5,972 nt of DNA, taken from NCBI GenBank assembly GCA_037447605.1, contig JBBHKD010000078.1:1-5972 (forward strand). The letters are read 5' to 3'. The DNA comes from Zygnema circumcarinatum SAG 698-1b (taxonomy: Eukaryota > Plantae > Zygnematophyceae). Under the pieces are notes generated by a model that did not search any database, was not told the DNA's origin, and saw only the letters and a list, made by a program, of their open reading frames with translations. Position numbers and translations under genes: made by a program. This document shows positions 2,149 through 5,972 of this stretch, one piece after another; the stretch's first letter is position 1; every line of letters starts with the position of its first letter.

Positions 2149-3488
2149 TGTAGCGAAACGCTACAGTCACCCCAAGGGGGAAGGGTTACTTAGGGCCCGG
2201 CGTGGCTTTATGTTTTCATCCAATGCAGTACCTAACGGTTAGGGCATCGGATACCCTATAGGACCACGGAGGTCCTAGGTTGAGCAAGTAGGCCTTTGGT
2301 TCCTGCGTGGGGGGAGCACCACATAGTCGCGGTCGCCCCACACGTGACAGGTCCCCTCCTGGCTTAAGGAGGTCAGGGGAATTCACCAGAGCTTTCTGGG
2401 ACCAATCGGTCCAGCGATTGGATCTCGGGCATGGCAGTCCCAGAGTCGCCCGTTCGTCCAGGTACAATTCACGGGTACGTTGATGCAGACGGTATGTCGA
2501 ACCGCGTAGCGCATGAGATCAGCCAGGTGTTCTGCCCAGCGTCTGGCCGGCCCAGCGCCCTTTACATCGCCCGGCCCAGCCATGAAATACGGTGGCGTTA
2601 AATGCGTTATGCGCTTCGACCCATTGAATGGGGGAGGAACAAATGGCGGTTGCCATTGGGCGACCACCACTTCCAATCCTCCATCTTCGGTAGGAGGTTC
2701 AGCGGGGAAGCGTAAAGAGGCGTGGGTATTTATGCGTCACCCAACCGGCATCTCTGGCATTCAGTTTTGACGAGGGGCTGCGCCCACCCTCGGAAGCTCT
2801 CTCTCTCTCTCTCTCTCACGCCCTCCTCATTGAACTTCAGTCTTTGGTGTGTGATTCCGCCCTTGAGGCCCGGCGTTTTTGATTTATTACATTGAGTATG
2901 GCGAGAGCCGGGTTCGCGGCCTTCTCTTTTGTGTGAGAGAACACCAGCGGGTCATAGTGAACCACTTTCAGCAGGGCCGGGAGGACGGGAGCCCACCGGG
3001 GCGCCACCTCCACCACTGTCCCTCGGGGCGGTGATGGAGGGAAGAACTTCGAGGCTAGTCCACTATGGAGGGCCGGTCAGAGCCTGAGATGACCAAGATG
3101 CATCCGGTGGCTAGCGCCCACCCTCCCGGCGTCACGGGGTAGGCGGCTCGGCAGACATCGCCGATCCCATGGTCGGGGCCCACATCCGCGGTAGGCGTCT
3201 ACGAAGATGAAGAAGAGGATCGGCAGGCTGGGGAGGCGGATGCCAAGCGGCCGGTAGCGTCGCCCTGCCTTTGTCAGAGGCGGTGGAGCTGACATGGAGC
3301 TCGCAGTCCGCCGCTGAGGTGGACAGCTCCAAATGGAGTTCGGGGCCTTTGGACGAGCTCACGGGGATCGAGGAAGGTATGCCCCGAACCCCCCCTCAGG
3401 CTGTAGAGGCAGTGGATGCAGCAGGTCCTGGGGAAGGGGTTAGGCAAATCACTCCGGTAGCGTCGTGCATCCCGGCGTAACCCGGTAC
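2149..3488 (+). mobile_element. LTR-like copy A (related to copy B; orphan or interrupted)
   Basis: Starts TGTAGC and is homologous to copy B end to end. It ends ...taacccggtac, versus ...taaccggctac in B. The 5-bp flanks (gtctc / gccga) do not match, so there is no clean target-site duplication. Confidence 0.55.
2797..2817 (+). repeat. (CT)10 microsatellite in copy A
   Basis: Direct reading. The homologous position in copy B carries (CT)7. Confidence 0.95.
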
Positions 3489-3495
3489 GCCGAAA

Positions 3496-4795
3496 TGTAG
3501 CTGGCAGCTCTGATCACCCCAGGGGAAGAGGTTACTTAGGGCGGCGTGGCACATGTTTCCATCCAATGCGGTACTAGCGGTTGGGGCAGCCGGATACCTA
3601 CTATGGGACCACGGAGGTCTAGGTTGGTAAGTAGAAGCGCGTGGGGGGCACCACGCATAGTCACGGTCGCCCCACACGGCGACCAAAAGGTCCCCTCCTG
3701 CGGCTTAAGGGAGGGATTGGGGATTAAAACCCGCGGGACCAATCGGTCCAGCGATTGAATCTCGGGCATGGCCCGGATCCCCCGGAATTCGCCGTTACGT
3801 CAGGTACGAATTCACGGGTACCGTTAGTGCAGACAGTAACTTCGTGTCGAACCGCGTAGCGTAGGATCCAGCAGATGCATTAATACTTGGCCCGGCGCGC
3901 AGCGTCGCGGCCCAGCGCCCAGCCAGAATCTGTTGATGGCGTTAGATGCGTTGTACACCTGCGGCCCATTGGTCGAGAGAGGTTTTAACGTGTGATGCGC
4001 CATTGGAGCCGGCCACCTTCCAATCCTCCATCTTTGGTAGGAGGTTACCGTGAGCGTAAAGGGGGCGTGGGTATTTGTCGTCCGCAACCAACATCTGCGG
4101 CATTCGGTTGCACCCACGCACTGAAACGCGCGACCCTCGAAGCTCTCTCTCTCTCTGAATCCCTCCCGGGCGTCGAACTCTGTTTTCGAGTCGCGTTGAT
4201 TCAGCGTAAATTTGGCCGGATCTCGGTATTACATTGGTATCGAGCAGCGTTCGCGACCTTCTCTTCAACCGAGAGAACTGCGGGTCATAGTGACCGCCGC
4301 GCCCGGGCGGAGGGACGGGGCCGGGGCCGCCACCTCCCTCCGGATTCCGGGGCGAGGAGATGGAGAGAGAACTTCGCGTCACATGGAGGGGCCGAGTCGA
4401 GCCCGCAGTGATCAAGGTCCTGCCCGGAGACCACCACGCCCCTCCCCACGCGGCGGGGCGTGACCGTGGCCTCAAACGTTTTGCCGCGTCGGGGCCCACA
4501 TCACACCGTGGTAGCCCGGCCCGGAAGATGAGGATTGAGAGTCGGGGAAGCCGTGAGGCGAGCATTAGGCTCGTTAAAGGCTGCTCAGGAAGGTGGACGA
4601 CATGGAGCTCATGATCCGGCCAGATGCGGTGGACACGCTCAAATGGAGTTCAGACCTTTTCGGACCGGGGCTCAGAATCCCGAAGAAGGTATGCCCCGAA
4701 CCCCAGTTTTGTAGGGGTGGATGCGGTCTGGGGAAGGGGGTTAGAAGCAGGCTCTCTCGGTAGCGTGAAGTACATCCGCGACGCTAACCGGCTAC
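3496..4795 (+). mobile_element. Putative 5' LTR (~1300 bp) of a Ty3/gypsy element (copy B)
   Basis: Starts TGTAGC and ends GCTAC, one base short of the inverse GCTACA. It is followed directly by a TGG-initial PBS-like motif and then gag. It contains clustered CCAAT boxes, a GC-box/TATA-like block and a CT tract in U3-R-like order. Confidence 0.65.
4143..4156 (+). repeat. (CT)7 microsatellite in copy B
   Basis: Direct reading. Confidence 0.95.
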
Positions 4796-4810
4796 TGGCG
4801 GCGGCGAGAT
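4796..4810 (+). other. Primer-binding-site-like motif (tRNA-Leu-like architecture, CCA-pairing TGG apparently lost)
   Basis: TGGCGGCGGCGAGAT lies immediately after the LTR-like end. It parses as T + 7-nt acceptor complement + 5-nt T-stem complement (GCGAG) + AT. It matches the last 15 nt of the tRNA-Leu PBS TGGTGGCAGCGGTGGGAT (recalled from memory) at 12/15, and all three differences are transitions. Confidence 0.45.
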
Positions 4811-4903
4811 CCGGGCCCCTGGTTTTCCACCAGTCACCAGGGGTGGCGAACCACCAGCGATGGGGACCCGTCGAGAGCGTGGCGGCGGCCCGGAGAAGGG
4901 TCG

Positions 4904-5745
4904 ATGCGGGGCTGCTCCCCGCAACCTCTTGGCGAGGTACCCGGCGAGGTCCGGGCCAGAGGTGGCCTGCTTTCCTTTTGGGAGGCAAATACCCCACCGG
5001 TTGCTTTCGATTGGCAGCGTGGATTTGGAGTCAAGCGAAGGGGCTACCGCCCGGCGACCAACATCCCCCCTCGATGGGTAAGCTTTGCTTACCCAGCACT
5101 CAGAGGAGCCGCATACCGTGTGTATGAGGGTCTCTCTGATGAGATTGGGGACGATTGGGATAAGTTTAGAGATGAACTTATCAAACACTTTGGGGCCCTG
5201 GATCCCGGATTGGAGGCCCGGGATAAATTTCAGAACATGGTCCAAACCCGGCGTGGCGGGTTTACGCGAGGACACGCGTGATGCCCAAATCACCTCCACA
5301 AAGCACAGACCCGGGCTGAGGTTCTTTTCACTTTAGGAATGGCACGGCCTGAGGGGCGACTAAGAACTAACCCACGGACTCACGGCGAGTGGACCGGCTG
5401 ACTTCAAAGGCATTGCTTTGATGCAGCCATTCGGTACGGACACGCCCACTGCGGGCGATCTTGAGGCCCTTCCAGAACTTGGCGAGGTGGGCGTCGACAG
5501 AGATTAAAATTGAAGGGACCCTCGGCTCTGCCAATGGCGAGGGAAAGGGCTCTATGGAAGCGGCCGGAGTATTTTGCGAAAGCCCCTCCAACTTACCTGA
5601 CGCGAGTTGACTCGCGAGGAGGAAATGGAGATACGGGAGAACAAAGTGACTGCGCTGCAGGGGCACAGGCCCGTGATTGCCCTCCCCGAACACCAAGGAC
5701 AAGAAGGGCAAGGGGCCGGAAAACCCCAACCCACCAGCAGCTTAG
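4904..5745 (+). pseudogene. gag: Degenerate Ty3/gypsy gag (Retrotrans_gag-like capsid core plus broken CCHC zinc knuckle)
   Basis: 5075-5245 encodes WVSFAYPALRGAAYRVYEGLSDEIGDDWDKFRDELIKHFGALDPGLEARDKFQNMVQ, matching the L-x-G-x-A...W-x-x-F...F...AR-x-x-L-x-x-L-x-Q pattern of retrotransposon gag. Downstream pieces sit in shifting frames: FHFRNG, RPE, DAAIRY, then LTREEEMEIRENKV..LRC..GH(x)ARDCP at 5607-5683 (CX2CX4HX4C remnant), ending KDKKGKGPENPNPPAA* with TAG at 5743-5745. There are several frameshifts and stops. The true start is unclear. Confidence 0.8.
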
Positions 5746-5761
5746 GGGTCGTTGCTGGTGG
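5718..5761 (+). other. -1 programmed ribosomal frameshift signal at the gag/pol junction
   Basis: Slippery heptamer G_GAA_AAC (5718-5724) is in phase with the terminal gag frame. It is followed by a 6-nt spacer (cccaac) and an 11-bp stem CCACCAGCAGC (5731-5741) / GTTGCTGGTGG (5751-5761) with one G-U pair. The -1 frame is open to 5930. Confidence 0.7.
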
Positions 5762-5972
5762 ACATGCTAGGCTAGGGGGAGGGAATGGGGCTGCCATCAG
5801 GGATAAAAGACTCTTGTTTCTTAGAACCCTGGACATTCTTGACTTGGTGGACAGGCCTCTGGAAGTGCAAGATCTCTTTGTGTTTGATGTACTCCCTTCT
5901 TCCATTTCTCTCTCTCACTTGCTTCTGTAGTACAGGCCTGCTCCGGGTTTTATGGATGTAAGAGTGATGAAT
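5722..5972 (+). pseudogene. Probable 5' end of pol (pre-protease spacer), one in-frame stop, continuing out of the window
   Basis: This is the frame reached by the -1 slip. It is open to TAG 5928-5930 and then continues YRPAPGFMDVRVMN to the window edge. No protease DSG/DTG motif is visible, so the call is positional only. Confidence 0.45.

Follow-up and report, generated by a model that had tools for sequence, protein, structure and literature searches.

Two Diverged Head-to-Tail Units in DNA of Zygnema circumcarinatum as a Probable Nested Pair of Decayed LTR Retrotransposons

Two diverged units of about 1.3 kb, referred to as A and B, lie head to tail in the window (the whole stretch of 5,972 nucleotides analysed here). 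They are probably the 5′ half of an ordinary nest of decayed retrotransposons, in which the 5′ leader of A, the older element, would have received B, a younger relative, by integration; a reading of the two units as a double LTR is not supported. Judged from its sequence, each unit most likely comprises an LTR, a primer-binding site (PBS) and a non-coding leader of about 600 bases, the parts with which an LTR retrotransposon begins on its 5′ side. Nested LTR retrotransposons are a common and well-described arrangement, and the locus fits it. The features of the window are collated below.

1–2148, unstranded: upstream flank, unrelated to A and B; presumably the DNA that received A.
2149–2891, plus strand: element A, putative 5′ LTR of 743 bases (TG...CA ends, 4-base inverted repeat, alignment to the LTR of B).
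2892–3495, plus strand: element A, PBS region and putative untranslated leader, ended by the start of B (homology to B 4234–4795).
2893–2909, plus strand: element A, PBS-like stretch, probably decayed (position homologous to the PBS of B).
3496–4233, plus strand: element B, putative 5′ LTR of 738 bases, TGTAGC...TATTACA (same first base as the LTR of A).
4235–4245, plus strand: element B, PBS of the tRNA-Met type (edit distance 1 from the published 12-mer).
4246–4903, plus strand: element B, putative untranslated leader (mismatches without periodicity; homology with A ends at 4795).
4904–5770, plus strand: element B, broken gag-like gene in one part (Pfam-like match; 3′ bound approximate, from the composition change near 5780).
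5771–5972, unstranded: tail of different composition (shift in GC and CpG; outside the repeat).

Two colinear units

The window was compared with itself by blastn at a word size of 7, and a single significant repeat was obtained: 2167–3488 against 3514–4795, colinear and in the same orientation, with 67.6% identity over 1382 columns (E=4e-128). In a global MAFFT alignment of 2149–3495 with 3496–4810, 823 of 1397 columns were identical, and identity amounted to 65% of the ungapped columns. The two units share the opening TGTAGC (2149 in A, 3496 in B), and a gap of 7 bases (3489–3495) lies between the end of the homology and the start of unit B. The flanks upstream of the two units bear no similarity to each other, and no purine-rich tract was seen by eye directly before either of them. 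The preliminary description, in which two colinear copies of about 1.3 kb were estimated to be 65–75% identical, to share the TGTAGC start, to lie 7 bp apart and, in the case of A, to lack a preceding PPT-like tract, is borne out by these measurements.

Neither 1–2148 nor the 1177 bases after unit B have significant similarity to the units (blastn, and local alignment against shuffles). A third, partial unit at 4790–4860, considered for its by-eye likeness to the unit start, reached z values of only 0.4–1.5 against shuffles and was rejected. A long-period satellite array was likewise discarded: the units number two only, and nothing similar is found before A or after B. Only short repeats were reported by TRF on the window. 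One of these is a (CT)n run present at corresponding places in both units (2797–2817 in A and 4143–4156 in B), about 35 bases past the presumed transcription start; with 10.5 copies, the run in A exceeds that in B.

Units A and B are non-coding, because the mismatches between them are without codon (3-base) periodicity in every 150-base window of the comparison. No Pfam match was obtained for the ORFs inside the units, and a search with the 207-residue chance ORF of unit B found no relatives.

LTR ends and primer-binding sites

About 740 bases into each unit the heptamer TATTACA is conserved (last base 2891 in A, 4233 in B); on one side of it conservation in the alignment is at its lowest, and on the other it is high. 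An LTR that ends there measures 743 bases in A and 738 bases in B, has TG...CA ends and runs TGTA...TACA in both copies, which amounts to a 4-base terminal inverted repeat. The 3′ end of the LTR would accordingly fall at TATTACA, a placement taken from these motifs rather than from comparison of a 5′/3′ LTR pair. So delimited, the LTRs of A and B are identical in 61% of all columns and 67% of ungapped columns; for the remainder of the units (A 2892–3495 against B 4234–4795) the corresponding values are 56% and 63%.

A 12-mer is conserved as the PBS of LTR retrotransposons (PMC7215508), and the same 12-mer, complementary to tRNA-Met, follows the LTR after 0–2 spacer bases in jatropha elements (PMC3852365). 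The test motif for the PBS was the 12-/13-base tRNA-Met form given in these two plant papers, which may differ from that of the host. On both strands of the window, a single site within edit distance 1 of the 12-mer was found (4235–4245, plus strand), and it begins one base past the terminal CA of the LTR of B. Such a site, with at most one edit, occurred anywhere on either strand in 14 of 300 shuffled windows, and 4 of 5000 random 25-mers came as near to the 13-mer PBS as B does. In A, the PBS-like stretch at 2893–2909 stands at edit distance 4 from the 13-base PBS, a value equalled by about 10% of random 25-mers; its position, homologous to the PBS of B, suggests that it is a decayed PBS. 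Just past the PBS a putative hairpin is formed in which the stems are identical in A and B and the loop is variable, as far as two sequences tell.

One further string, at 3507–3519 on the minus strand and thus just inside the start of the LTR of B, stands at edit distance 2 from the tRNA-Met PBS. It is taken for a chance occurrence, its order relative to CA being wrong for a PBS.

In the preliminary description the LTR was taken to extend over the whole 1.3 kb of each unit. A would then be a solo LTR or the 5′ LTR of a sister family, B would begin 7 bases past it, and the PBS of B would lie at 4796. The alignment of A with B up to 3488/4795 and the TGG directly after 4795 agree with such a layout, and large genomes commonly contain LTRs of 1.3 kb. 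The ends of the units speak otherwise: CA and a terminal inverted repeat are missing where the 1.3 kb units end on the 3′ side, and both are present about 740 bases in. The near-perfect tRNA-Met PBS is found inside B after this internal, TG...CA-compatible end, whereas the stretch after 4795 stands at edit distance 5 from the tRNA-Met PBS (the only motif compared), the distance commonest among random 25-mers and hence that expected by chance. A literature search for the PBS string proposed after 4795 returned no paper. The common termination of the two units, finally, is predicted equally by nesting. LTRs of 1.3 kb, with a PBS after 4795, are therefore unlikely, and neither of these earlier assignments is confirmed.

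Conserved islands, gag-like gene and flanks

Identity between A and B is unevenly distributed. The variance of identity among 30-column bins corresponds to z=7.5 against shuffled columns, a level reached by none of 2000 shuffles, and the longest exact run shared by the two units is 23 bases (shuffle mean 12.5). Three islands stand out: 2398–2435/3735–3772 (38 bases, 97%), which includes a CCAAT box, joined in A by an inverted copy; 2670–2699/4017–4046 (30 bases, 97%), which includes another CCAAT; and 3369–3392/4681–4704 (24 bases, 96%). For the two best conserved blocks, exact 23- and 25-base patterns had 0 matches in collections of metagenome and prokaryotic genome contigs. CCAAT occurs at 23 sites in the window against 12.4 expected, a count reached by no shuffle, and four CCAAT boxes stand at corresponding places in A and B. 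The patchiness points to constrained cis-elements rather than to uniform decay in place.

A TATA-like TATTTAT is located at 2727–2733 in A and is weaker in B; about 30 bases past it TCAGTT follows (2761–2766 in A), and then the (CT)n run, which is retained in both units. The stretch of CCAAT, TATTTAT and TCAGTT would represent a promoter region, with a transcription start and a division of the LTR into U3, R and U5 assigned conditionally on these motifs. No canonical AATAAA is present on the plus strand of units A and B.

This pattern bears on a second explanation, according to which the LTR-plus-leader was duplicated in tandem and in place, by unequal exchange or replication slippage, and both copies then decayed over a long time. 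Head-to-tail copies of the same orientation and of similar length would be expected from such an event. Neutral decay, however, should be roughly uniform, and this does not fit two blocks at 97% (38 and 30 bases) in a background of 65% (z=7.5, as given above). Roughly one third of the positions differ, which would call for a very old event, yet CpG is not depleted. The junction, moreover, falls exactly on the first base of the LTR, which is unlikely for a breakpoint; this speaks for integration and against a duplication with random breakpoints. Duplication in place is for these reasons judged quite improbable.

Downstream of the leader of B, the ORF beginning at 4904 was matched to Retrotrans_gag (PF03732) over nt 5093–5248 (profile positions 5–59 of 97; E=1.3e-3; 19.3 bits against a cut-off of 24.1). 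An exhaustive comparison with 1.84 billion representative proteins gave two weak matches for this ORF. One of these (E=9.2e-4) is a protein that itself bears Retrotrans_gag; the other, a protein with homing-endonuclease-associated (HNH) repeats, was matched through a short repeat motif and was dismissed as spurious. No close relative of the gag-like ORF was found among the 1.84 billion representatives, nor was there a sequence match in the PDB or a match in NCBIfam, and its AlphaFold model, with a pLDDT of 43.8, is too poor for use. The gag call of the preliminary description is thus retained in part: a Retrotrans_gag-like match exists, at a score below the Pfam cut-off and with one weak supporting protein, and the assignment as a putative gag is weak.

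The gag-like gene of B is broken: a stop closes the reading frame within the expected domain, and a recognisable continuation is found in no frame; the three forward frames of 4796–5972 contain 8, 7 and 19 stops. On both strands, the ORFs of the window were without a Pfam match to protease, reverse transcriptase, RNase H or integrase. The absence of pol may be due to the end of the window, about 1 kb past the start of gag, or to truncation of the copy. A search with the 171-residue chance ORF opposite gag found no relatives, and the ten ATG-start ORFs of the window are absent from the protein collection.

The last bases of the window (5771–5972) have a GC content of 0.45–0.49 and a CpG observed/expected ratio of 0.09, against about 1 elsewhere in the window. 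This change suggests a junction near 5780 with different, CpG-depleted DNA, at which B would be truncated; 5771–5972 may be the end of the remnant of B, or other DNA.

In the upstream flank (1–2148), no tRNA or Rfam match and no Pfam match worth noting (ORFs on both strands) were obtained, and the tRNA and Rfam scans of the whole window gave no match. Within this flank, 1191–2148 is richer in AT and unlike 1–1190 in composition, and possibly represents a piece of another repeat. A short ATAATAAAACT string is found twice, at 1325–1337 and 1480–1492, 155 bases apart. Just past a TATATAAT-like string, a near-perfect palindrome of 44 bases with TGACGT-type cores is located at 1505–1548 (−17.5 kcal/mol as single-stranded DNA, z=−5.2 against shuffles). 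Lying in the unrelated upstream flank, it may belong to another repeat as a regulatory element.

Nesting of B in A and its alternatives

The arrangement can be accounted for as follows. A and B would be the 5′ parts of two LTR retrotransposons, related yet distinct, of which A was presumably present first. B would have integrated later, in the same orientation and by the action of an integrase, into the leader of A at 3495/3496, so that the intact LTR tip of B came to abut this leader; the rest of A would be expected beyond the 3′ end of B, outside the window. The identity of 65–68% with islands of 85–97% would reflect the divergence of two lineages under constraint on cis-elements, namely the LTR tips, the CCAAT/TATA promoter region, the PBS and the hairpin past it. 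Both copies would be dead by now, B through its broken gag-like gene and A through the decay of its PBS.

The first base of the LTR of B (3496) lies within recognisable leader of A, and the bases that precede it continue that leader. On this account the homology ends at 4795 because B interrupts A at the corresponding place, not because an LTR ends there, and 4795 is the boundary of nothing in B. Since A can be aligned to B only up to the interruption, the common termination of the two units needs no special explanation. Of the proposal in the preliminary description that B had inserted just past the end of a sister LTR, one part stands, in that B appears to be a separate, related element that landed beside A. 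The position does not: as each unit consists of LTR, PBS and leader, B is not at an LTR/PBS junction, nor 7 bp past a sister LTR, and would sit about 600 bases past the end of the LTR of A, in the untranslated leader of that element.

Comparable arrangements are on record. A survey of 12 plant genomes covered 1491 nested pairs of LTR retrotransposons; the 5′UTR was among the regions often occupied, and some families preferred older copies of their own family ("autoinsertion") (PMC6911290). The present locus resembles those pairs in that the inner element starts at the exact LTR tip within non-coding 5′ sequence of the older one, and in that A and B are related and of the same orientation. It differs in that only the 5′ half is present here, whereas the 3′ LTR of B, its target-site duplication and the resumption of A, which would be the defining proofs of nesting, lie outside the window. 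With respect to same-family nesting, it differs in that an identity of about 67% makes A and B sister lineages rather than members of one family. Element B has further features in common with tRNA-Met-primed elements that carry a PF03732 gag: LTRs of about 740 bases with TG...CA ends, a PBS one base on, a long leader and a gag-like ORF. Unlike in those, the gag match is below threshold, and protease, reverse transcriptase and integrase are absent from the window.

Tandem arrays and two-LTR junctions likewise present LTR-bearing units head to tail and in one orientation. Tandem LTR arrays arise from one element, however, and their LTRs are near-identical; here 604 bases separate the end of the LTR of A from the start of the LTR of B, and the two LTRs are 61–67% identical. 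A two-LTR junction or a tandem array with a shared LTR was rejected on these grounds.

A recurrent doublet was also considered, in which two promoter/leader modules are propagated in tandem, or in which elements of the B type target one spot in leaders of the A type. Nothing at the locus speaks directly for it, and family-biased nesting and a preference for the 5′UTR do exist in plants. A working composite would be expected to keep its modules similar via reverse transcription, or to keep both PBS intact, yet that of A has decayed; for nested pairs, joint retrotransposition has been judged improbable (PMC6911290). Recurrence is consequently considered very unlikely, and one locus only permits no statement on targeting.

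Very unlikely, too, is an assembly artefact in which related copies of a repeat were wrongly joined. Misassembly does tend to affect regions rich in repeats, but the join at 3495/3496 lies outside the sequence common to both copies, and an identity of about 67% is too low to confuse an assembler.

Taken as a nested pair, the locus would correctly be annotated with two decayed elements, one inside the other, whose LTRs measure about 740 bases, instead of a double LTR of 1.3 kb. It also calls for caution in similar cases: when a relative is nested in the same orientation, the homology of the outer element to the inner one necessarily stops where the latter was inserted, and the outcome looks like two whole units in succession. 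If the junction between the leader of A and the LTR of B proved to be recurrent in the source genome, and only then, it would have a bearing on target choice among related retrotransposons.
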